Made by a program: the position numbers and the translations under genes. This document shows, in pieces, positions 2,156-64,000 of a stretch of 64,000 nucleotides of DNA (its first letter is position 1; the number at the start of each line of letters is the position of its first letter). Location of the stretch: contig OZ176056.1 of the NCBI GenBank assembly GCA_964247055.1, positions 8,184,001-8,248,000 on the forward strand, written 5' to 3'. The notes under the pieces are model-generated. The model saw only the letters and a list, made by a program, of their open reading frames with translations, had not been told where the DNA came from and did not search any database. Source of the stretch: Paragordius varius. Lineage: Eukaryota; Animalia; Nematomorpha.

Positions 2156-4683
2156 TTTTACATAATTAAATTTCTAACAAATTTTAAAAATTCTTAGGTC
2201 CCCCATAATTATTTAAATATAAAAAATTTAATAATTTATAAATTGTTTTTCTACCGTTTTAACCGTCCTTTAAAATAGAATAAATATGATATAAGGTTTA
2301 ATGCTAAAATTTATTTTTGAGCAAGTGTGTATTTTTAATGAAAAATTTTTTTGATGCCATAAAATAACAGATATCTAAAAAAATCGTGATATCTCGGCAT
2401 TTTTACGTTTATTTTAAGAATACTAGCCCATTTTGTAAAGGGCAAAAATATGAAACCTTCGAGCTTATCCTAATAAAAAATATTTTTTAGCTTTCTAAAT
2501 AATATCTTTTGGAATGAATTTAGTTTGCAAAAAATATAAAGCATAATTTTTATGAATTTGGCGATTTTCGGTATGGAGCAGTAATCCATAAGTCCTAACT
2601 TTCTTAAATTACTAAGGCCCAAAATCAAAAGTTTGGAGGATACATTTGTCATGCGGCCCCACGATTTTATGCACATGTGATTAAAATATATTTAAAATTA
2701 ATTATCTGCTCTAAAATTCTGAAATTTTGGAATTACCCTAAAGATAGTCTATACCAAAACGGTCGAGATTGCGCGATAAAATTTTTAATATTGCGCAAAT
2801 TACATCAAAAAAATATTTAATATGCACACTCTGCTTAAATATTTTATTAGCGTATTTTGTATTTTGACGTATATTGAAAAGAGTATAAAACCGTTTTAAA
2901 ACATTATAGACTTCCCTCTAGACTTGATGAGGCTGCATATATCTATCACACCTCGAAATATTTATTAAATGATTTCGTCTTCAGATATATTTTGATATAA
3001 ACTGTGTTTATTATAAAAATCCACCTAAAAAACCCAGCGCCTCGTTAATAGGTGATAGTAGATTAGCATCATAGAATTAATATAGAAAATGCACATTACA
3101 GTGTTCTGTTTCACTTAAATATATGCCATAAAAAATGCTTCAGCAAGATTTTACCAAGAATTTTTTCACAAAGTATGCATTTTTTAATTAAATATATATT
3201 GTGCTAACATCTACTATTTTCGGTTTAAGCTGATTTATTTAAAAAAGTGTACACTTTTGTGGTATTTGCTCTGAATATCGAAAATATAACAAAATCACAT
3301 AATATTCTAAATAATTTTTTTGTGAAAGCTAAAAAAACATTATTATACACTGCGTCCAAAATAAAAAAAATTTTTGAATGCTTAAATTTTTTTCTAAATA
3401 TGATACGCTATATTCATAGTAAAACAATATTTTTTCAATTTTCTAAATATTAGAAAGTTTAATATACGCTATATGGCAAAAACATATTATTTCGTTCAAA
3501 TTATGTTGCAAAATTTTTTTTTTTAAAAAAAAACTTTTTTTGGTTGAAAATTTGTTTAAATTTTATCGCCTATCGCGGTTTATTTGAAGAGAAGTTGCCT
3601 ATTTCGGGCAGGTCTAAAAATTTGACACTCTCGGAGCCTATATCTGAAATTTTATAAAAATGTTGTTTTGCTTTTAATATGTGGTTTAATATTTTATACC
3701 TGATTTTTGGAATGCTATTCCCTTAAAAAATTATTTAACATTAAGTCAAATTTTGCCATTTTTGGGTATTGGCCATTTACCATACATATATTTATTTGAC
3801 ATTTTATATAAAAATTATACAAAAGCAAGTACATTAATTATAATATCTTTCAATTTATAGATGCGAACCCCGAAAGTTTCATTGGATACCTCTCAAAAAT
3901 ACAAGTTTTCTTAAAAGAAAACCAAAATTTTTCTAGATGGCGCGATAAACTTTATCCATATTTGGGAAATTACAAATATTTTTTTAAAAATTGCATAGTA
4001 TATAAACAATTTACAGGAAAAATTTAGTGTTACAAATTTTGGAATTTCGGAGCATGGTGGAGAAACGGAATAAGATTATGAGATCATAAATACATTTTTT
4101 TTATATTTCAATGAAGCGCTTATAGGTATATTTAAATTCTTTTTAGGGTAACTTTGTTTTAAATGGCGCAAAATCTGAAAAAATATATAATTTTATATCA
4201 ATTTTATTTTGATGTTTATATACTAATATATATTAAAAAATGCAAAAACACAATTTACTTAGAAATTTTGTGAATAAATCTTTGAATGGATATATTGTAA
4301 AATCTTTTAATAAATTAAAATTTTTATACATACTAATGCTATATAAAACAGAAAAGTTAAATAACATTAATCAGTAATAGATATTTAATTCTAATTGATA
4401 TATCATTATATTCTTCAACATAAATTAGTTGAGGTTTAATGGGTAAATAGGTTATTTTATAGAAACACACTCATATCCTTTGAAAAATTGATTATATCAT
4501 TAAAAAAATGGCAAAATACTGCTGAACGAAAAATGAAATAATGATAAAAGTGTGCATTTGTTTTATATTAAACGTTTTAATATATTTAATGTCAATCGTG
4601 TCAATTGATTGTGAAAATTCTCAAGTGCCCTATACTGACCATAAAATAAAGGTAGAATTTTAAATAATACATTTACATTTAAA

Positions 4684-6156: not shown

Positions 6157-7325
6157 CACTGTGTACAAAAAAAGAAGGTAATTTTTTTTTTCATGAGATA
6201 GCTTATGACCAGCGTATTTATTTGCCGTAAAATTTTTTTTTTGTTGACAACCTAGTTTTTGAAATATTGAGAGAGAATCGAAATTGGGCAAAGTGATTAA
6301 GGATAATGTAAAAAATAATGAAAATTTGACATATTATGGTTTATTATCATTTTAGGATATATTTTCAATATATAAATAGCCTAAAATCATATAATTAAGG
6401 TTTCTATAAAATTACAGCTCCAAAGATAGCGTTAACACACTTAAAAGACAAAAAAATTTAATGACTTTGTATTATAATAATTTTTTTTATTTATTACCTA
6501 ACCCCACTATTAAAATCTTAACTTTCATATTTTATTCAGTAAAAAAACTTATATATCAAAATAAAACCAAAAATATTGATTTTTATTTTTGCATTTTTTT
6601 GTCATATGGTTTATGAGTGTATAAAAAATTTATACTGTTTTATTTTGGAACTTATATGAGTAAGAATTATTATGTATATGCAAAAGATAGTGGAATATCT
6701 ATCAACAATCCGTACAAATCCCAATAAAAAATTGATTTGTCTTAAAACAGACTTGTTACAGGGATTTGTAAGGATTGTAGATTGATATTCCACTACTTTT
6801 GAATCCTATTTTGTATAAATTTTCCCACTCATGTAACTTCCAAGATAAAACAGTATAAATTTTTTATACACTCATAAACCAGAAGACAAAAAATGCAAAA
6901 ATAAAAATCACTATTTTGGTTTATTTTGATATATAAGTTTTTTTACTGATGTAAATGTGAATGTTAAGATTTTAATAGTGGTTTAGGTAGTAAATATTTA
7001 AAAAAAATTATTCTAATATAATATTTTTTTGTCTTTTAAGTGTGTTAAAAGAATAACGCCATCTTTTGAGCTGTAATTTTATAGAAACCCTAATATGATT
7101 TAAGGCTATTTATATATTAAATATATCCTAAAATTATATTAAACCATAATATCCCAATTTTATCTTTTCGAATACCCTTAATTATCCATAATTTTCACTT
7201 TTTGCCCAATTTTGATTTTCTTTTAATATTTCAAAAACTAGGTTGTCCACAAATAAACATTTTTACGGCAAATGAATACGCTGGTCATAAGCTATCTCAT
7301 GAAAAAAAATTTTTTGCACACAGTG
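6157..7325. mobile_element. Foldback DNA element with CACTG termini (CMC/EnSpm-like, non-autonomous)
   Basis: Starts CACTGTG and ends CACAGTG, with ATA on both sides (3-bp TSD candidate). Arms of about 550 bp are imperfect reverse complements around a centre near 6750. Confidence 0.75.
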
Positions 7326-8659
7326 ATATATTATCAACACAATCATTTCTATATTTTACAATTACAACTAAATAGCTTATATAAGAAAAAATAAGGTTTT
7401 AAGTATGGTTGTCTTTTAGAAAAAAAAATTGTCTTTATATTTTTACATTTAGTCTGTTTTTCAATTTTTACTGTAAATACCCTTATAATGTTTCAAAAAA
7501 ATTTACTAAAGGAGTATAAATTTTATTATTGATATGATTAAATCCTTTAACTTTTGATACGTTATAAAGAAGATTGTTAAACACATTACAACTAACCGCC
7601 AAAACTAATTATAGATATTTAAGATTATATAATTTATTTTCGTTTTAGTTACTCTTTTTAATAAATGTTTCATGTTGAATCCAAAATTATGCTATGAAAA
7701 ACCAAGAATAACCGTTTCTAGCTCAACAAAGGATCGTTTTTATAGCGGTTTTTTCTTTGTAAGCTGTGAAATATTAGGAATGAATATGAAAATATTTAGT
7801 CCGTAATTTTTAATAAAAGAACGCACTATAATTAACATTTTCTGATATTGGGATCTACACATAATCCAAAATATTTTAATTTTATAAAGTATCAAGACTT
7901 GATGGTGCGTTCTGTTTTAAGGTTTACGAACCATTTTAAAAGTTATGTGACTTTTTTTTATTTTTCGAAATCATATGATCAAAAATTTAGCGCATAATAT
8001 CCAAATAATTTTTTGATAGTAAATTCTTCAATCCGAAATATTTTGTTATAAAACTTTCTAGTCCAATAATTGCCACTTTTACGCCAGAATAGAGCGATAA
8101 AATTATTTTAAATCACAATCAAATCTAATTCATTAATTCGAAATAAAATACCGTTTAAAAATTAAATGTGATATTCAGTTATTGGTGCATTTAATTTTTT
8201 ATAATAGCATACATAAAAATTAAACTTTGGACATTATAAAATTTATGCGTTTTTGTTAAATTTTAAAATATGTGAAATTTTACAATATACAAACATTTTG
8301 TGTTTCTTAAATTTTTGAGCATTCTTCAAAAAAGTACTTTGAATAATATGCGTTAAAATTGCGATTTCGATTACCAAATGTTATTATTTTTCATTTCTTC
8401 TGTAAGAAGAATTTTTATTCATAAAATAATATATATAGAAAGTTATTTTAACCCAATTTTCACTTGTGGGAGGATTCTAATTTATAGTTTAAATGAATTT
8501 TTCTAAAAACATATATTTAAGAAAATTATACTTGATGACAATTTTATCCCTTTTACATACTGCTTTTTTTATTATCACATATAATGGGAAAAAAATCAAA
8601 ATTTTATTTATTTAATTTTATAATTTATTAATTAAATAAACACCAAAATAATGTCCATA

Positions 8660-51098: not shown

Positions 51099-51590
51099 AT
51101 GATGAATTTCAGTATGAAATATTTAGCTTGTTTCACATTAATTGCGCTAACAAGAATGAGCTTTGGGAGGGCAGAGGATTGTAAATCAAAAGCATTGATT
51201 GATTCCACCAATCAAAGTTTAAGTGAAACCTTTAAAAGTGAGTCTAATTTTAGGATTAAAATTACGAATTGAATATTGAAAATTGATATTTTTAATATAT
51301 TTTGATATGTATGACTTTAGATACCACAAGCCTCTTACTTTTCGGTATGTATTAAACTAAAAAATATAATTTGTGTGTGTTCACAAAAAATTTTGGTGAT
51401 TTTTTAAACAATTTCATTTCTTAGATTCACATTCGATAATAAGGGATGTTCATACCCTTCAAAGTAAATTTATGTGTCAACACTACATTTTAAAGACAAA
51501 TAAATCTTTGACAGCTTTTTCGTTATATGCATTATAATATTTTAATTACTTTTATAGATTACACAACGAAAATAAATTTTAGTATGTTAT

Positions 51591-51651
<61 letters not shown>

Positions 51652-54600
51652 ATTGGAATTTTTTAAATTATTAAAGAAAATCTCTTTTGATTAGATTACT
51701 ACAATATATTCTTAGAGTTTTTTCTATTCTTTTTATAAAATATATAAACTTTAAAATTTAAAAGTTGAAAATTAAGTATACTATTACAAATTTTATTTTA
51801 TAATTTATAGTTATTGATCAATTCAATAAATCAAGTAAAGACTTATCATAATAATTATAAACCATTTAGATTCAGCTAATAAAACCAGCAGAGACCTGGA
51901 ATGGAAAAAATGTAAATAAATTAATTAAAATATACAAATAACTGTGTGCAAAATAATAAAATAATTTTTTTCATGAGATAGCTTATGAATTCCTTTTCCG
52001 TAAAAATTTTAGCTGTTTACGACTTAGTTTTTGAAATTTTGAGAGAAAATCGAAATCGGTCAAAAAGTGAAAATTTAGGATAATTAAGTATAAATCAAAA
52101 AATAATGATGAAATTCGAAATTTTATGGTTTATTTATTTTAGGACATGTTTTCAATATATAAATGACCTTAATCTCAGTTCAAACGATGGCGTTTTCTCA
52201 AAATACTTAAAAGACGAAATTTTTTTTAATGAAACACTTTTAAAATAATTTTTATCAAATATTTGCTAAACTCATACTAAAATCTTAACAATCATATATT
52301 TAGTAAACCTTTATACATAAAAATAAAACTATAAAAATTGTTTTTAATTTTTTCATTATTTTGTCATCTGGGTTATGAGTGTATAAAAAATTATTGTTTT
52401 ATTTTGAAATTTTACATAGCGGGAAGCAATATAAGTTTATACAAAATAGGATTAGTAACTAAAAATCCATACACATTCCAGTTAAGATATAATATGTGTT
52501 AAAACAAACTTGTACATAAATTTATAAGGATTTCCACTACTTGTAAATCCTATTAATTAATTTATATACTTTATGCAAGATTCCAATATATAACAGTAAA
52601 TTTTTTATACATTCATAAACCGGAGTTGCAAAAAATGAAAAATATAAACAAAATTTCTTTGTTTTATTTTGATAGATAAATTTTTGTTTGTGAATAAAAT
52701 ATGGATGTTGAGATTTTAGTAGTGAGTTTAGCCAGTAACTAATTTAAAAAATTATTTTTATATAGTTAATATGTTAAAAGAAAAATTAAGATATTATACA
52801 CACCTTAACTATATGATTTTAGCCTATTTATGTATTGAAAATATCTCCTAAAATGTTAAAAAACCATAATATCTCAAGGTTTATCATTATTTTTTGAATT
52901 AGCCCTAATCTTCATTTTTTGCCCAATTTTGAATTTTTCTTAATACTTCAACTAGGTCGTCAACAAACTAAAATTTTTAAGGCAAATGAATTCGATGAAC
53001 ATAAGCTGCTTATCCTTTTAATATATATTTTAAATGCGGATCTGCCAAGTACTGGACTTTTTATTAAAATATTTTGCGTTAAATTACATATACCATCAAT
53101 TCGCCCAATATGCCAGATACAAATAAATAATTAAATTTTGGTATAGAATGGGTCCTAATTGTCAAAAAAATCAAGAAAAATACCATCAATTAAAATTGGA
53201 ATATGTTAACTTATTTGAAAGATTTAAAAACCCAAATATCTTAGATTAACAATAAGATACACTCGAACAGGTCTTAAACAAATGGCTTTGCTTTACGGGC
53301 CTAAATATTTGCGTAAAAAACCAACGGCTGCATTGAAAAATATATATATGGGCATTAAATGTTTTTTTTATATTTTTAACATAAACCGTTAAATGCAGAC
53401 ACAAGATACGGATTGATTTATAATTTGTTTAAGAAATATCAATTTTAGATTTAATCGGCATATTTTTGCAAATATGCATTTCCAAATTTGACGCGGACCG
53501 CAGAATTTCTTGTAAAAATTTTCTCAACTTCATATAATTTGGCGTTTATTTAACTAAATAAATATAAGCATAATATAAATTCATTATCTTGATCGTGATT
53601 TAATTGCTAAGTTGTTATGGCAAAAAACTTATGGTTAATATTAAAAATTATTAATATGTTCTTACTCAAAATTTAGTTAAAGCTGCGCTAAGTATGATTT
53701 AATATATTCATGAATTGTACTAAATTATATTTTGTTTCATTTTAAATGAATATTATTATGTTTTAAGATCAATCAACGAACAAAGTGTCGGAATTGGGTA
53801 AATACTTAGATTATTTGTTATATCCGTATAAAAGGCTCATTATATATCTACTTCAATATTTTATACGCAAATTTTGAATTTGATTTCATACCTTACTATC
53901 CAAAAAAATTTAATAGTACATTAATTTTAAATGCAAGAATTAAAATTTAGAGTATTTTTAATCATTATTTGGCTATAATTAGAATAATATGCTAAATTTT
54001 TTTTGATTTGTAAATATACCTTTTTTTCAATCAAAATCAAAACTTTGGCTAATAAACACACAATGCTTGTCTATTCAAACTCTACAATTATTTTTAATTA
54101 AGTTAATAATTTTAAAGAATTTGATGGTTATAAATCAGGATATCTTTAATTTGAAATTATAGGTATCGTATTTTTTAAAAATGTTAAAAAAATTTCTTTT
54201 AGTCGAAGTTTAAAAAAAGATGTATGAATTTACGGTTAACGCCTACAGAAAGATTTGCCTTATATTTTAGTTTATCATTTTGTTAAAATCATATTAAAAA
54301 TAGATGTAGATGCTTAGCTAAATCTTTGTCAATTTTAAATAAGGAGAATAAAATTTTAATAATATTTAAAATTTTATTTATTTTATTGGATCATATTAAA
54401 TTTTATTATACCATTTACAGTTCAAAGTCACCCTAATTTATATTATATGTTTTTTTAGATTAAAATTACCTTTATATTTTAATCTATATATTTATAAAAA
54501 GAGTTTTCGGTTAAAATTAGAATAATACTGGAAAAAAATAATGTAAGCCATAATGATATATTTATATTAATAATGCGTTATATTCCGAAAACACATAATT

Positions 54601-57600
54601 TTTTAGGGTGAATTTGAATTGTTCGAGGGTGAATTTGAATTATTCAAGGGTAATTTAAATTGTGAATGGTATATAATAGATTAAATCTTTTGTGGTACTA
54701 TAATTCGGAGAATATATTATAAAAAGTTTCATTTCAATATAAAAATAACCGAAATTCTGATGCATTTTGGTGAATTCCAATGTTCATGGGTTTTTTTAGC
54801 ACAAAATTTCAAATTCTTAGAGTTTCTTAAACCTTAGCAATATTTGATAAAAGAATTGCCTCAAATGCAAATAACCCTTTTAAAGCGTTTCACGAATAGT
54901 TTAATGCCAACCTATTTAATATTTTTTTGAAATAATATTTATACATTATAACTATTTTTTTATCTAGAAAAAAGTATGTAATTTTTTCTATGGCTTAAAA
55001 ATTTTTTGTTTAATTTTTAATGGAATTGTGAACGATTTCATGTCCTAAATATGGAATTTTACTGTACATAAATATATATGTGTGTAAAAATTACATTCCA
55101 AAAAATGTTATATTAAAGTTAAAATTGATATTAAATTGAAAAAACGTAAATATATAAAAACAAATTTTTTTTCTAAAATACTACTAAACTTTTTAAATCA
55201 TAATTTTTTTTAACTAGAACTCATTGTTCAATATTACAAAGTATAAAATAAATCTCCACATGGTAAAACAATCAATTTTATAGTTTACAGTGGTATTTAA
55301 GGTTTTAAAAAGTATAGTTGTCCTAAAAAAATTTGTCTTTATTCTTTTACGTTTTATCCATATAATTTCAATTTTTAGTGTAAATATTAGATCTATTTTT
55401 TAATTATTTTGCGTTTTAGTGTTTAATAGTGCAAACTATTCACGAGATTTTAAACGGGAAATGTCTATGCTTAGTATGAAACTTGCTTAATTGTGTTTTC
55501 ACAATCTTATTAGGCCTAATTAAATGATGACTAATATAATTATTTTACATTAGTTTTAATCAATAAAATGAAAGGTAATTATTTATTTATCTAAATAAAA
55601 AATAGACAGATATGTAGCTTTTTATTTTATAGGTTAATTAAGCCAAGTCTAAACCTTTAACGGTTTTTTTTGTAAAAACCTCGTAATTTCTAGAGAAAAT
55701 GATAATTTATATTGTTTAAATATTGTCATATTTCGCCCATCTCTCAGGTAATATATGAATGCTATGTCACAAAAACAGATTGTCTTTTGCGTTGAAGCAT
55801 TCTCATGTAGCAAAATTATTTTGCCATGTTTTCTGTACCATTCCGGTCATTTTTTAATCAAAGCATGGTTTATAAATTAATCATTGTTGGCCACTTTGTC
55901 CATTAACAATTTCTCCTGCTTGGAAAATGTATATCATACGGCTCTGGTCCCACTAGTCACCATAAAATCGCAGGAGGGATTTGGACTTGGTGTTGATGGT
56001 TAGTTTGCCAAGGTGAAAGCCATAAATTTTCCCGTCTTGATAATATATAATAAACCCCTCTTTCATTACAAAGTAAAAATGATATCCTTTCGCGACGTCA
56101 AGCCGAATTTTAGATACTTTGCGATTTCGTAATTGACGTTAATTCAAAGGTCGGACCCATTTACCAAATTTCCGTTGCACGTTGATGACCATTGATTGTG
56201 TTTTCTGATACATGTACATGTAACGCGTATCCGAATTGCCGTTTAATTTGAGGTGAGTTCTCCAACAATTTTGCAATTAAACGGCTTTGCAGGTATGTGG
56301 TCTACCAGAACACCTCTACTCTCTTTCACATTGAAATCATAACTTTAAAATTTTTGAAACCATGTTTTACAGTTGGAATTTAGAGACGACAATGGCTTTT
56401 AACAGCCTTTTTATTTACGAGACAAGCATTATTGAGTCGCGCAAATTTATTTTTTATACAAATTCGAAATGTTTACTGAATAAAGTGACTGTGTGTGTGT
56501 TTGTCGTTAAACAATAGATTGGCAGGATGTTTTCTGTAAAAAATCAATCGTCTGCGCATCATTGATTTTAAGTTAAACCTTTAATGGCTCGACTACACCT
56601 GATTTTTACCAGGAAAAATAAAACCAGCTGATATTCAAAATATACAATATTAACGATTAGCTATTTAACACTGATGCAAGAAAATGAGGCGCTTGAAAAT
56701 TATTTTCTTTAAAAACGCCTTATATTTAGAATTTAAATATTAATAATGAAGGGAAATATATATGAAAGAAACTACACTAAGAAATAAAAAATTTTGTGAA
56801 AAAGGATGATTTATTTCTCATATAAATAGATACGTTGAATATAGTTTAAATAGCCAAAAATATGTAATTTTTATAAAAAATATAATTATTATTCGAATAT
56901 CTTAATCTTTTGTATTTAATATTAGTTCTATCAAGGAAATTGCAATCATCTTTGAAATGTAAGTTATTATATTAAATCTAAATTTTTGTCAAAAAGTTAT
57001 TTGGGACGAATTTTCAAATCCGATAAAATCCCATTTTTAAATAATCATTTGCAACAAAAGTAGTCAAATAAATGGAAAGTTATTAAATCAACAATCATAT
57101 AAATAATATAAAACATTAATTACTGGCGATGCGTTTCTTTTGAGGGCGGAAAACCGGAGGGCATAACCATTTTTAAAATATGTAAAAATGACATTGGATG
57201 TTTTTAATATATTAAAGGAGAATGTTGATTTTAAATCTAAACAAATTTGTTAAATTTGAAATGCTTTTTAAATTTTTTATATCAAAATATTACTCGATAC
57301 TTAGTGTTACATGAGCTCAAAACTAGCCTATATATGGTTAGAAATTTAAAAAAAATATCTTAACTTGAATACCTATATATAAAATGTTAATTCCGAATAA
57401 TTTAAGTCTGCGTATTATAATAATTTAGCTAGAATGGGTTTTTTTAGGAATAGATTCTCTTTTTTATGTATTTTTTCTCTTTTTAGCAGGGCTCTAAACC
57501 TTAATGGTTTTTATAAAACATTTTTATTATTACAATTACAAAATAATAATTATAAACTAAATATCGACAAATTTTCATAATATAATCCGCAAATTAAATA

Positions 57601-58906
57601 GCTATATATAAGTACAAAGGTAGGTAATAAGTATATTTGATCAACTATCGTATCTTTGGAGGAAATCTTTATTTAACTTTAAAAATTAATGCACCCTTAT
57701 ATTTTCCGTTATGGGCAATTGTTTAAGGACGCTATTAATATATATATTTATATTTTTGTTAAAATTTAGGAATATTGTAAAATTATTTAACTTAGATACT
57801 TTGAAAGATAATAAGAATATCGTATTATATTACGGTTTTATTTTACCAGTTTATTTCAAAAGGTAAAAGTATTTAAAGTCGGCTTTAAAAGTCTATCTAT
57901 AGCTTAAAAAATCTACGTATATAATTATTTCTGAGGTTTTCTTCAAATGTTAAGCGTAGATCAGTAAAAATTGTCAACATTATACGATCCATTTATTTAA
58001 TAATAATAATATAATATAATATTTAAACGACAAATTTTAAAATTAAGATGGTTGTTACATTTTGATGGTAAACGCGAACACAAATGTACAATCAATTTTA
58101 AAATATTTTAAGCAAAAAGTTTCACTACTCTTTTGGCAAATAAAGTGCAACTGGAACTTGGCTGATTCCTAAGAGTTTGAAAATGAAACCATAGGAATAA
58201 TTTTAGAACCAAAATCAAAACGCCGTTCTTACGTACGTACGGTGGTGAAATAACTGAATTCTTGTTATACACCAATTTAAATATTTTATATATTTTAGCT
58301 GTAAATTGTACTCTTAAAGGTAAATTCCTTAAAATACAGTATGCATTTTAATGGTTGCTTATTTCACACTATACTATAGTAGAGCAATTTGCAACACAGT
58401 AGTGTATGGAAAAAACAAAAAAATTGAACAAAGAATTTCCTTTCTTTTTTTCCATACCCTCCTGTGTTGCAAACTACCATACTATAGTGTGAAATAAGCA
58501 ATCATAAATTAAAATTCTACGGACAAAACATAACAATATAAAGACTAATATTTATTTTCCAAAAGACAACCATACTTTTTCAAGCATATAATCTGTTTAA
58601 TCAAAATTCTAAAATATAAAATTGGTGTTAATAATATATATCTATGTTTCACACTTTGCCATTTTAAACAATGAATTATATTTAAAAAATTTAAAAGTAA
58701 TTATCCTTATATTGTCTTGCCCGTATAATTTTATTTACTAAATGATTTATACCATAAAAATTAACATTATAAGGAGGAAAAAACGTAATAATATAAAAAA
58801 TATTTTTTTTAAATAACCAACCATACTTCAAACTCTAATTATCGTAGATTGCAGGCAAAGAAATAGAAATTTTAATTGTTAACCACACTCAATATCTTTC
58901 AAATCC

Positions 58907-58939
<33 letters not shown>

Positions 58940-61900
58940 AAAAAAAAGTTTAGATTTAGAAAGTATGGTTGTCTCATGAAAAAAATATTTACTTTCTGAT
59001 TCTCTATTCTGTCTGTATTATTTCCATTTAAACTGTAATAATTTTATAATTAGATATGGATAAGATGATGTGTAAGTTTTATAAAAAAAATTTCTAACAT
59101 TTTTAGTTTATATTCCAAATAATATAAATTTTGTTTTTTAGATGTTCTTTTATACCAAAAACTTTTGACATATGCCGCTAATGGTAGTAATCTTATTATA
59201 TTTCTAAAAATATTGAATTGATATTTGCTTTAACCCTGATTTATAAATCCTAAATGTAACAAAAAAGCTAAATGACGGATTGAAAATATTTTGTAAGAAC
59301 AGTTATTAAATCCGTGAAATAAAGATATGAACGAAATTTAAACTGAAAAATAAATAGAAAATTATATTTTACACTGAAAATACTAAATGATTGTGAAACC
59401 GTTCGTCAACACAATATTGGAAAATTAATTTAAATTTGAATGCTTTTTAGAATGGTTTTTTTTACCTTAATCAATAATAAGTATCTAACTATCGATAACA
59501 TGATTTTTATCAAATGTGTCTATGGTTGGTTCAAAAATAGAAAAGTTTTTAATCATGCAGAACAGAAAATATGAAATTATACAGACAAAATGCAAAAAAA
59601 TAAAGACACATACTATTAGACAACCATATTTTTTCCTAACTAACTATATAATACCATGTGTAAAATATATACCTAAATGTGTTACCAAGTTATATTACTA
59701 ATTTTACATTTATAACATAAAACAATGAGTAAGTTATATTTAAAAAACCCCGAATTTTAGTAATGCAATTTTATAAATTGTAGTCTTTAATTTTCATTTT
59801 ATCCGTATAAATTCAATTCTTACTGTATAATATAAGCAAGCATATATCGTTTAATGACAATTTTTAAACTAGGTGGAAATGTGTCTTTCCTTCCCATTGA
59901 TTTACAATCTAGGATTATATCTCTCATTCCAGGTATCTTATAAATACTTAATTTTATAAAGTTTCAAGAGTGCAAAATATTTTTTGATATGTTATCTATT
60001 TTTAAAGAAAAAAACGCTTTCAGTTATTATAAAAATTTACTTCTATTTATACAACATTATTTTTAATTTTTTACATTTTAAACAGAGGTGTTCAATACAC
60101 GGCCCTTTGAGACTTTATGTGTGGACCTGAAAAAAATTTGGATATTTATAATAAAAAACTTAGCAAAATTTATATTTCTCTATAGTTACTCTAAATAATT
60201 CTATCCATTTGGCAAAAACAATAAAAAAATATTTTATTGTGTATGCTTTTTTAGTCTTATCTTTAAAACCTAAAGCATCATTTATAAATGTCCATATATT
60301 GTAAGTCAGGCCCAGCGGGTGTTTTGAGTTAAAAATGTGACCCGCAGAATTCATTTGTGTAAGAAACTCCTGTTTTAAAATAACTAAATTTATTTCAATC
60401 AAACCATATGTACTTATGAATTAAAAGTTATAGGCAAATAATTTTTAACTAATTAGTTTGATAAAATTTGATTTTTTGTCGATTCTAAAGCACGAAATTC
60501 ACCAAAATTATTTGAGTCTTTTAAATTGTAAAATCCGTCCTAATTACAGATATTTCATATTATTTTAGCAAATTTTACGGTGAATGCAAATTCTTCAGGT
60601 TCTTTTACATTATATGGATATCTATTATATAATAAAAATCCTTACAAAAAATTTATTCCAAATACACCTATATGAATTTAATCAAAATATTATATTTATA
60701 TGGTAAAAAATTATATTATGGAATTGATTGGGCGAGTTCTGCTGCAATTAGGGAGAGACAGGTCAAATATGTCTTTTTAGAAAAAACTATGCATTCAAGC
60801 AGTTTTATAAAGTTTCGACTTTTTTTAGACAAAGTGATTAAAAATTAAACATTCTTGTAACTTTTTATGATAGATTTGGTTGACACAATCAACATTATGC
60901 TTCTAAATTATCGGGACATTGATTAATATGTTGTATTTTACATTATTTTGAACTTGAATTATATTTAATATACCATTTAAAATTCAAAATCGCCCTTGAA
61001 TAATTCAAATTCACCCTCGTCAAATTCACCCTAAAATAAATTATGAAATTTCGGTCTCATTAAAATTTATATTTTTATGGCAATGTTTATTATTTTTTCA
61101 GTATTATTTTGATTACATACAAAAAAATTTTGAAAAAAAATTTAAAAATATAGGTAATATTTATTATTGAAAAACACAATTTATTTTATGGAGAACTTGA
61201 ATTGTTCGAATTGTTCTAGGGTGAATTTGAATTGTTTAAGGGTAATTTGAACTGTAAATGGTATTAGCGGACAAGTACAGCAAAGTTTTAGATCATATCT
61301 GTACTTTGAATGGCTTAAGGGTGTTTAATTTACATATCTGTTGGCATGTATGAAATTTTCCGCTTTTATCTTAAATATATGACTAATAAAATAAAAATCT
61401 CATACTTGGTAACAGACATGTATTAGAAACACAGGCTTAATAACTCTCGTTACTGTATATAAAACATTGTTTCATGACATTTTTCGTTCATTAGAAAAAT
61501 TGGATGTTTTATTTAAGAATCTAGGTGATATTTCACGCGCCCTCTATATATTTGACATTTTAACGCTTTACTGACTTTGGCATATCAATTTGTTATTGAT
61601 TTAATTATTATAATTCAAAATCATTTATAACAATTATTATACAATTTGTAAAAATCACTTGCAAAAATCCAATGAACTTTATAGGGATAAAAAAACTAGA
61701 CACTAGCTTTAAAAGAGGGATATCTTTTTTTTTCGTTGATATTCCACGTTGTCCAAAATAATTCATCAATCATGGTTATTGTTTAAGTACTGTTAATTAA
61801 AATTTAAAAGTTTAAAAAAATCTCTATCCTTGATTTTGTCTAAATAACCTACCTATATTCAATAACAATTAAAAAATTATATATATATATATGTATATAT

Positions 61901-62490
61901 ATATATTAAATATTAACATCTTTCTTTATAAAGATAATGAAACAATTCATTTGTTTGAGCGATTGAAACCATACCTGGGTAAATTTATATAATTTTATGA
62001 TGTAAAAGATTTAGCCAGACTTGTCTTTTTTTAAAATTTGGAAAATTGCTACATTGTAAGCTGATGTGGCCTTAATTCGTTTAATTGAATCAAATTGATA
62101 ATTAAAAAAATATAAAGACATATACTGATTTTTAAATCGAAATCGTTGTCAATTAGTTTTATTTAAATTTCCTCCAAAAAACATCACAGTTTGTAAACCA
62201 TTAATTCAATTGAGAAAATTTTTACCGTTTTTTCTTAGACTTTTGATACGATCTTAAATTTTATATAAATGCCTAATAGACAATATTACCCAATACATTC
62301 CGGTCAATGCTACTCAAGGTTGTATTTATGTTTCCTTTTGATTATAAATTTTTAAGTATGTCTATTTACTAAAAAACCAAATTAATGTTGGTTTTAATCT
62401 CAATACGCGGTATTAATTCAAATATTTTATTTGCAGATCACAGACAATTGGTAGCGAATTCAACAATGACACACTCAAACAAAGAGCTTA
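51099..62490 (+). CDS. Micro-exon gene MEG-B: secreted, N-glycan-rich protein (3' end unresolved)
   Basis: Signal exon 51099-51237 (MMNFSMKYLACFTLIALTRMSFG..., donor GTGAGT). Open phase-1 symmetric exons: 51321-51344, 51425-51463, 51558-51581, 51811-51834, 51870-51911, 53677-53691, 53768-53797, 54968-54973, 55420-55473, 55554-55574, 56926-56958, 58299-58319, 59054-59071, 59142-59183, 61495-61524, 61934-61978, 62280-62318, 62437-62490. Weaker candidates: 55618-55632, 57796-57821 with 57850-57862, 58207-58236, 60781-60801, 62735-62746. Confidence 0.68.
51599..51648. repeat. (AT)n microsatellite
   Basis: About 25 perfect AT units inside a MEG-B intron. Shorter arrays lie near 34835-34861 and 58907-58934. 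Confidence 0.95.
51940..53010. mobile_element. Second, more eroded copy of the CACTG foldback element
   Basis: Begins ACTGTGTGCAAAA...TTTCATGAGATAGCTTATGA and is colinear with 6157-7325. Lies in a MEG-B intron. Confidence 0.7.
54411..54669. mobile_element. TA-flanked 21-bp-array MITE, shorter copy
   Basis: TA-CCATTTACAGTTC ... GAATGG-TA, with GGGTGAATTTGAATT units. Confidence 0.7.
55735..56440 (-). pseudogene. Degenerate mariner transposase
   Basis: Minus-strand remnants SGRP (about 56300), GKWVRPL (about 56150; mariner WVPHEL), WDQSRMIY (about 55940; WDQKGVIY) and HGKIILLHENAS (about 55810; LLHDNA). Many stops. TIRs not identified. Confidence 0.75.
58351..58505. repeat. 155-bp imperfect foldback hairpin
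   Basis: Arm blocks GCTTATTTCACACTATA, TTTGCAACACAG and GTATGGAAAAAA are matched by exact reverse complements around a loop of about 30 nt. Confidence 0.85.
60083..60372. mobile_element. Degenerate hAT (Charlie/Buster-like) MITE
   Basis: CAGAGGTGTTCAATACACGGCCC ... AAACTCCTG termini. A similar end remnant lies near 32491-32520. Confidence 0.4.
60973..61261. mobile_element. TA-flanked 21-bp-array MITE, third copy
   Basis: TA-CCATTTAAAATTC ... GAACTGTAAATGG-TA, with AATTCACCC units. Confidence 0.7.
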
Positions 62491-64000
62491 GTAAGTTACT
62501 TTGGATAAATTTTATGTGAGAATCAATCTACCATACCAAATCAAATTTAAGTCAAAAATTATTTAAGACTTTGGCCCTACGCTTTTAAAATAATGTTGTG
62601 AATTAAGAATAGCAAAAAAATTTCATCCTTGAAAATAATTTGGATATATTTCCTTTCGATACGGTTCAATGCCTAAAATCTATTTTTGCCTTGTAAAGAT
62701 AATTAACAAAACCACAATAGTGCTGCATTCATAGGCAATCCGAGCGGTTATTAATTTAGGGTTATATAAATTTTATTATCTATTATCAAATTATATATAC
62801 AGTGAGATGTCCTTTTATGCGAAATCCCACAAATTTTATATATGCAAATTAAAATATTCTGTCAACTCAACCATTTTTAATAAATATAAAACGAACATTT
62901 TAAAAGCTTTGTATATCACTTTCTAAAAAACCGTACAGTCACAGGCTAAAACTAGATATTTATACATTATATTATCAAAAATATTTTTGAAAAATGCAAA
63001 TCGAAATCAATTATATGCCTGTTTACGTGATAAGTTTCAATTATTCAATCCGAATGACTCTTAATAAATCATGTTTACATTCTTGGCAAAATTTGTAAAA
63101 AATGTTTTGATAATTTGAAAGGAAAAAAAACAGAAAATTAATTTATTCGATCTAAATTGTTAAACTTTATAAATAACGGATATTTTACAACATTAAAACA
63201 GTAAGCAACCACAAAAAACTGTACAATACAGGGATATCTTTATGACGCACTCAAATAAATTTTTACTAAATTAATTGATATTAAATTTTTGACTATTGGA
63301 TATTGTTCCCCTCCTATTATTTATAATTCGATGAAAAAATAATTTAAAATACCTCTTAAAATTAGTAAATGACCTATAAAAAATTCATGCAATAAAAATA
63401 TAAATTATACGGGCGAAACGTAAAAATATACAATTTTGATAAAAAAATATTTTTACGTTTTGTCTCTGCATAATTTCAAATTTTACTGTAAATTATTAAA
63501 TTTTTATTTAATTTTTAGATCAAATCCAAGATTTTTTACCCGATACTATACAGTCTAATGTAGAGTCTAATGTGAGGCAAGGTTGTTTCATATATTAATT
63601 TTTAATATAAAAAAAAATTACTAATTATTTAAAATTAGAACAAATCCAAAAAATAAAAAGTATAAAATATATATGATATATTCTATAAAACATTTTTGAA
63701 AGAGTTATTGATTTATATTGAACACATAAAAATGTAGAGAAATACGGATGGGTAATTTAATTCTTCTGCTTGCAAATTTATACCGTTGTATTCGATTTAT
63801 TTATATTTTTAAAGTCTAAAAACAATTATAATGATATTTTATTTAATAATAGTTTAGTAACGCCTATATAAAATATTAATTTTTTTTCGATTCTTTTTTT
63901 TTGATAAATTTTAAAATTGTGGAATTCCATTACCCTGAAAATTTTATAATTAAAATCAAATACGGAAAAAATATTTTTTATACCATTAAATATATACCAT

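Follow-up and report, generated by a model that had tools for sequence, protein, structure and literature searches.

Can a gene be recognized, and its end be found, when its coding sequence is divided among exons of a few dozen nucleotides in a transposon-rich genome? This question is raised by a locus of the hairworm Paragordius varius (Nematomorpha), located on the forward strand of contig OZ176056.1 (GenBank assembly GCA_964247055.1), of which we analysed a stretch of 64,000 nucleotides (positions 8,184,001 to 8,248,000; hereafter the window, whose numbering is used throughout, also for positions beyond its end). A first-pass annotation had proposed that the window contains, in addition to a micro-exon gene called MEG-A, a second one on the plus strand, MEG-B, in which a signal peptide exon at 51099 is followed by five micro-exons and by at least 13 more symmetric exons scattered up to 62490. 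Our analysis leads us to conclude, with good though not complete confidence, that a real, single-copy and lineage-restricted gene begins at 51099 and that the segment 51099-51911 most likely contains its entire coding part. The window has a G+C content of ~25% and abounds in retroelements (long interspersed nuclear element-like and Gypsy-like sequences, RVT domains); the assembly that was searched comprises 110.6 Mb in 44 contigs.

Anatomy of exons 1-6

Exon 1 (51099-51237, 139 nt, plus strand like all exons of MEG-B) opens with an ATG, ends in phase 1 and is followed by the donor GTGAGT. Its translation reads MMNFSMKYLACFTLIALTRMSFG|RAEDC. As judged from inspection and a hydropathy scan, this first exon encodes a signal peptide, with a basic n-region (MMNFSMK), an h-region of 11 residues (YLACFTLIALT) and a c-region (RMSFG). 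Cleavage is likely before RAEDC, with S-F-G at positions -3 to -1 and thus small residues at -3 and -1, and would leave 23 mature residues encoded by exon 1, including one N-glycosylation sequon (N-x-S/T), NQS. Five micro-exons follow: exon 2 (51321-51344, 24 nt, acceptor TTTAG, donor GTATGT), exon 3 (51425-51463, 39 nt, CTTAG, GTAAAT), exon 4 (51558-51581, 24 nt, TATAG, GTATGT), exon 5 (51811-51834, 24 nt, TATAG, GTAAAG) and exon 6 (51870-51911, 42 nt, acceptor TTTAG), the last being either spliced at GTAAAT (51912) or terminal. All five are multiples of three and open in phase 1, and the six exons, together with every junction codon, are free of stops. Introns 1 to 5 measure 83, 80, 94, 229 and 35 nt; the fourth holds a (TA)n microsatellite, and retention of the fifth would introduce a stop at 51849-51851. 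This succession of a 139-nt signal exon and phase-1 exons of 24, 39, 24, 24 and 42 nt, with GTATGT, GTAAAT or GTAAAG donors, had been correctly described in the first-pass annotation.

Reading through the end of exon 6 gives TGT AAA TAA (51912-51920), with a stop at 51917-51919, as had also been noticed, and an AATAAA (51915-51920) that overlaps this stop. The read-through product is 99 aa long. In this short form exons 2-6 account for 153 of the 292 coding nt (52%), so that coding lies mostly, if only just, in tiny symmetric exons. The only cysteines encoded by exons 1-6 occur in LACF and DCK, to which read-through adds that of KCK. Five sequons (NQS, NTT, NYT, NKS and NKT) are present in ~76 mature residues. 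Two of them span splice junctions, the codon A|AT at the exon 1/2 junction providing the Asn of NTT and the same codon at the exon 3/4 junction that of NYT, and NKS and NKT are located in exons 5 and 6, respectively. The last nucleotide of exons 1-5 is A or G, and the first two of exons 2-6 are AT or TT; skipping of any of exons 2-5 would therefore create a junction codon for Asn, Asp, Ile or Val and never a stop. The locus thus has the capacity for up to 16 in-frame isoforms through skipping of exons 2-5.

The end of exon 5, when read into intron 5 (51825-51845, NKSSKDL), resembles a part of exon 6 (51879-51899, NKTSRDL). This similarity, which does not reach significance (E = 3.6), may go back to an exon duplication.

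Comparison with chance

Splice motifs discriminate poorly in this genome, because the donors of ordinary genes are degenerate. The nine CCT chaperonin genes (L028-L036) provided ~17 introns that could be placed uniquely, with donors such as GTTTTT, GTATTT, GTAATA, GTAGAA and GTAAAT and with AT-rich acceptors; with so few uniquely solved introns and such degenerate donors, no useful splice weight matrix could be obtained. Against such a background, the donors of MEG-B exons 1-6 are conspicuous in being close to the consensus. Our strict motif set is the universal GTRAGT/YAG consensus. A candidate pair was defined as a strict acceptor and a strict donor 6-63 nt apart, and a chain as consecutive same-phase exons joined by introns of 30-400 nt. 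Between 51099 and 52000 the plus strand contains seven strict pairs, all seven symmetric and open in phase 1, while other 12-kb stretches contain two to nine pairs, of which one to four are symmetric. The strict chain at MEG-B has a length of six, made up of the five internal exons and a spurious acceptor within exon 1. The longest chain had four members in the null of 348 simulated 94-kb sequences (2088 strand-phase sets) and at most two in the real-locus control, ~70 kb of other loci including the CCT loci.

Moreover, exon 1 is the only clean signal-like ATG exon ending in phase 1 on the plus strand between 50 and 66 kb, 16 kb in which two other signal-like ATG candidates are found, and the five sequons of exons 1-6 compare with ~0.6 expected at the background rate (15 sequons in 1997 candidate codons). 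A rough combined estimate gives a chance of ~1e-5 per window for such a coincidence. We consider it highly probable that exons 1-6 are real.

Uniqueness and homology searches

Exon 1 and the surrounding 1-kb locus are single copy: DNA and protein searches of the genome yielded no paralogue, and the only genome matches to the 1-kb locus were those of the (TA)n microsatellite and of the end of a transposon. An exon-by-exon tblastn search over 94 kb, including MEG-A, detected no similarity. This agrees with the earlier view that MEG-A and MEG-B are unrelated in sequence and share only their architecture, a signal exon followed by symmetric phase-1 micro-exons.

Exon 1 served as the query for protein-level database searches, exons 2-6 being too short to be used as stand-alone queries. 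With exon 1 we found no Pfam family, no candidate among the proteins of 38-122 aa covered by a word search, no usable match in the Atlas search and, in all of these and among 1.84 billion representatives, no homology to a MEG protein family. The sole match among these representatives, P0001, was rejected as spurious, since it is a five-fold repetitive open reading frame (ORF) in which five weakly matching stretches add up to the score. On the sequence data the gene is most likely lineage-restricted.

The region downstream of exon 6

The first-pass annotation extended MEG-B to 62490 with at least 13 further symmetric exons, giving a model of 19 or more exons. Our counts do not bear this out. 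With lenient motifs, we found 38 symmetric open candidates in phase 1 of the plus strand versus 29-43 in the other strand-phase classes, and with strict motifs one versus none to two; motifs of intermediate stringency likewise revealed no downstream excess. When candidates were counted in 2-kb bins, the figures were 17 versus 12 downstream of MEG-B and 25 versus 9, by the same measure, for MEG-A. From 51912 to ~58000, a transposon-laden stretch with no exon signal, the opposite strand and the other phases hold just as many candidates, and the plus-strand phase-1 candidates of 53008-58000 contain one sequon in 257 codons. Some downstream candidates sit in repeats, such as 52450-52497 and 64089-64142, the latter in a miniature inverted-repeat transposable element (MITE). 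For the exons claimed from 51.9 to 58 kb, chance is the probable explanation.

Between 58 and 66 kb, sequons are concentrated in the strand and phase of MEG-B. Counting unique N-x-S/T positions in all symmetric open candidates of each strand and phase, we found 13 sequons in 392 candidate codons of plus-strand phase 1 (~3 expected) versus 15 in 1997 codons in the other five strand-phase classes (Fisher p = 1.8e-4). In fixed windows of 8 kb, 9 and 10 sequons were counted, whereas the 210 windows of the null averaged 2.3 and never exceeded 9. A rough positive control is provided by phase 1 of the minus strand at 72-90 kb, where 1160 codons contain 27 sequons versus ~0.4% in the other strand-phase classes. 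MEG-A displays the reverse pattern, with an excess in the number of candidates but not in sequons.

Ten sequon-bearing candidates of this block, from 58174-58224 to 65744-65797, lie outside known repeats, and in four of these the sequon begins with the first codon, as is the case at junctions 1/2 and 3/4. All are on the plus strand and in phase 1. Besides 58174-58224, they are 58299-58319 (21 nt, NCT, TTTAG/GTAAAT), which alone among the downstream pairs satisfies the strict motifs; 59873-59932 (60 nt, NVS); 60569-60598 (30 nt, NFT and NSS, weak donor); 61934-61978 (45 nt, first-codon NET, donor GTAAAT, weak AAG acceptor); 62280-62321 (42 nt, NIT and NAT) and 62437-62490 (54 nt, NST), both in single-copy DNA; and, beyond the end of the window, 64536-64553, 65066-65113 and 65744-65797. 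The best-looking splice sites of the downstream region flank 62437-62490 (a pyrimidine tract and CAG before it, GTAAGT after it), and the whole segment 61940-63370 is single copy in the genome. For the candidates at 58-66 kb, neither the G+C contrast between exons and flanks (p = 0.19) nor pyrimidine tracts (0.47) nor hydrophobicity (0.07) was significant. On balance, we would give several of these candidates about an even prospect of being real exons; if they are, the block would extend over ~58.2-65.8 kb and overrun both 62490 and the end of the window.

A signal-like ATG exon could precede this block at 57434-57506 on the plus strand (MGFFRNRFSFLCIFSLFSRA|LNLN). It ends in phase 1 and has a weak donor (GTTTTT), and ~670 nt separate it from the first of the candidates with a sequon; it may start a separate gene or be a product of chance. 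Another signal-exon candidate, at 57711, was discarded, as it sits in a repeat.

Is there a gene, and where does it end?

Several points weigh against the conclusion that 51099-51911 belongs to a real gene ending close by. The strict motif set was fixed when exons 1-6 had already been seen, and the sequon test was devised post hoc, prompted by the richness of these same exons in sequons. Codon log-odds trained on CCT exons do not favour the proposed frame, a measure that has no power on these exons. Intron 5 (35 nt) is shorter than the shortest of the ~17 CCT introns (71 nt). The terminal Cys codon arises automatically from T + GT, and an AATAAA is estimated to occur by chance in ~8% of 30-nt stretches at the base composition of the window. 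Finally, neither orthologue nor paralogue was found, the splice junctions are deduced from the sequence, and a looser motif set produces chains of at least six in 4.4% of simulated 94-kb strand-phase sets. One could imagine that splice-like motifs and open frames happen to follow one another in this AT-rich DNA, or that the locus is what is left of a decaying gene overrun by transposons. The lack of homologues of exon 1, the neutral codon statistics, the few per cent of loose-motif chains and the transposon-heavy neighbourhood would all fit this explanation, which we nevertheless regard as very improbable. The six exons and their junction codons are all stop-free and the strict-motif simulation never exceeded a chain of four; despite the caveat of the looser motifs, the case beyond chance is restored by the coincidence of a signal exon of matching phase, an excess of sequons and a compact spacing.

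If the gene is real, more than one position can be proposed for its end. The 99-aa short form appears at least as likely as a longer one. It is suggested by an in-frame stop, overlapped by AATAAA, at a distance of two codons from exon 6, by the read-through Cys codon, which would provide the mature protein with its second cysteine, by the abrupt change in spacing, with gaps of several kilobases after introns of 35-229 nt, and by the lack of any exon signal over 5.5 kb. In addition, a foldback transposon closely follows exon 6. The proposal that the gene ends at 51919 with six exons, and that the 58-66 kb block is a second gene or noise, is one that we would accept about half of the time. Alternatively, exon 6 could be spliced at 51912, across transposon-filled introns, to more phase-1 micro-exons, in which case the gene would run from 51099 to at least ~65800, past the end of the window, and encode a larger secreted glycoprotein. 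The symmetry of exon 6, whose donor is that of exon 3, speaks for this possibility, as does the sequon excess at 58-66 kb in the same strand and phase, several of these sequons being located at the first codon of an exon as in junctions 1/2 and 3/4. It would also dispense with a second signal exon, for which no convincing candidate exists, 57711 being in a repeat and 57434-57506 having a weak donor at a repeat edge. However, the region 51.9-58 kb shows nothing above chance, introns of several kilobases would have to follow introns of 35-229 nt, the stop and AATAAA stand only two codons past exon 6, the downstream candidates lack contrast in G+C or pyrimidine tracts and at least one sequon-bearing candidate (64089-64142) lies inside a MITE. 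We consider this extended gene possible, and distinctly the less probable outcome. A still more doubtful arrangement would combine the six-exon gene (51099-51919) with a separate micro-exon glycoprotein gene starting at 57434-57506 and reaching ~65.8 kb. The exon signal, absent for 5.5 kb, indeed returns ~670 nt after this candidate, in which an S-R-A motif fits the -3/-1 rule by inspection, but signal-like AT-rich ORFs arise by chance about once per 8 kb and strand, the GTTTTT donor is weak and at a repeat edge, and the exon has no paralogue in the genome.

The predicted product of the short gene

For the six-exon gene, the splicing, the 3' end, secretion, glycosylation and exon skipping are predictions from the sequence. 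The likely product would be a precursor of 99 aa, ending with the TAA at 51917-51919. Its signal peptide would direct it into the endoplasmic reticulum and be cleaved before RAEDC, leaving a mature protein of ~76 aa. The polar tail encoded by the five micro-exons, rich in Asn, Ser, Thr and Lys, would be part of a protein that acquires up to five N-linked glycans before its secretion. Only two mature cysteines are predicted, near the two ends, the second being supplied by the read-through codon. Exon skipping could generate isoforms that differ in their number of glycans.

Other micro-exon loci and known systems

The first-pass annotation had suggested, from two unrelated micro-exon genes in 64 kb, that these represent a genome-wide gene class. 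A third such locus just past the window agrees with this suggestion. It is an apparent phase-1 micro-exon locus on the minus strand, at window-equivalent positions 72000-90000 (G000:C7:8256000-8274000), with a chain of five exons at 74408-75431 and a tandem duplication of 2.4-2.9 kb (L014:143-1106 and 2549-4063, 75-94% identity depending on the segment). MEG-A is located, like MEG-B, in an AT-rich and transposon-laden setting. One may tentatively imagine that phase-1 micro-exon genes encoding secreted proteins form a class in which single exons each carry one N-glycosylation site, an idea to which we would give rather low odds. In the same speculative scheme, the site would often be placed at the first codon of the exon or be created by splicing, and exon skipping would add or remove single glycans.

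The architecture of MEG-B is reminiscent of that of the micro-exon genes of schistosomes, which have most of their coding sequence in very small symmetric exons, are alternatively spliced and are apparently restricted to platyhelminths (PMC4350168). MEG-B shares with them a signal peptide in the first exon, small symmetric exons, skipping that keeps the frame, a small and presumably secreted product without recognizable domain and a transposon-rich neighbourhood. It differs by its hairworm host, by the number of secure micro-exons, which is only five, and by the strikingly dense N-glycosylation sites. A second likeness is to the bicycle genes of aphids, which contain many tiny internal exons starting at codon position 2, encode CYC motifs and have at least five exons, with a mean of ~17 (PMC9168663), compared with six secure exons in MEG-B. 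Cassette effector families of the pea aphid are likewise built from miniature exons (PMC7495047). MEG-B has in common with these aphid genes its small internal exons of one phase, starting at codon position 2 (phase 1), and an N-terminal signal peptide, and it can be likened to them as regards fast-evolving products that sequence searches cannot place. In contrast, the paired CYC motifs of bicycle genes are absent from the translations of the six exons, exon 1 is unique and does not belong to a conserved signal-exon family, and the phylum is another one. Judging from these comparisons of sequence, MEG-B belongs to an architectural kind and not to any homologous family. Our literature search found no paper linking micro-exon genes to Nematomorpha.

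The micro-exon genes of blood flukes are thought to vary surface and secreted antigens by exon skipping, and those of aphids are effector genes. The secreted proteins of hairworms are of interest because these worms alter the behaviour of their hosts. If transcripts confirm MEG-B and its neighbours, this architecture would have arisen independently in another parasite lineage. The class tentatively outlined above, with one glycosylation site per exon, would have converged, in a third parasitic lineage, on the design of schistosome micro-exon genes and aphid bicycle genes, and could provide candidate host-interaction factors. Genes of this type will probably escape gene finders, in a genome whose ordinary donors are already degenerate; RNA evidence is thus indispensable.

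Neighbouring repeats and other observations

The foldback transposon that follows exon 6 (51927-53007, ~1.1 kb) begins ~15-30 nt after it, with an uncertain left edge between 51908 and 51941. It is palindromic and belongs to a family with hundreds of genome copies of ~70% mutual identity, three of which are located within 94 kb (6158-7327, 51927-53007 and 89668-90866, in the L015 region); no coding capacity was detected in the element. The MITEs previously noticed among the downstream candidates could be confirmed. A many-copy MITE family of ~260 bp occupies 54347-54697, palindromic MITE sequence is found at 58335-58689 and a MITE family of ~300 bp at 60953-61267, with another copy just beyond the end of the window (64001-64338). 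Other repeats are present at 55105-55408, 57503-57806 (a repeat family adjoining the candidate exon 57434-57506), 58746-59050, 59562-59747 and 63380-63516. For the previously noticed mariner fossil, which we place on the minus strand at ~55650-56470, the frame translations contain stops and decayed transposase motifs (GRP; LLHENAS.., cf. HDNARPH) that we take to be mariner-like; Pfam searches with the short ORFs of this remnant gave no match.

Finally, the mitochondrial contig of the assembly (L037, G000:C44:5980-10320) carries a cox1 gene with six in-frame TGA sense codons, palindromes without spacer, whose arms measure 131 and 97 nt, and, upstream of cox1, a tandem array of hairpin units of 49-52 nt.

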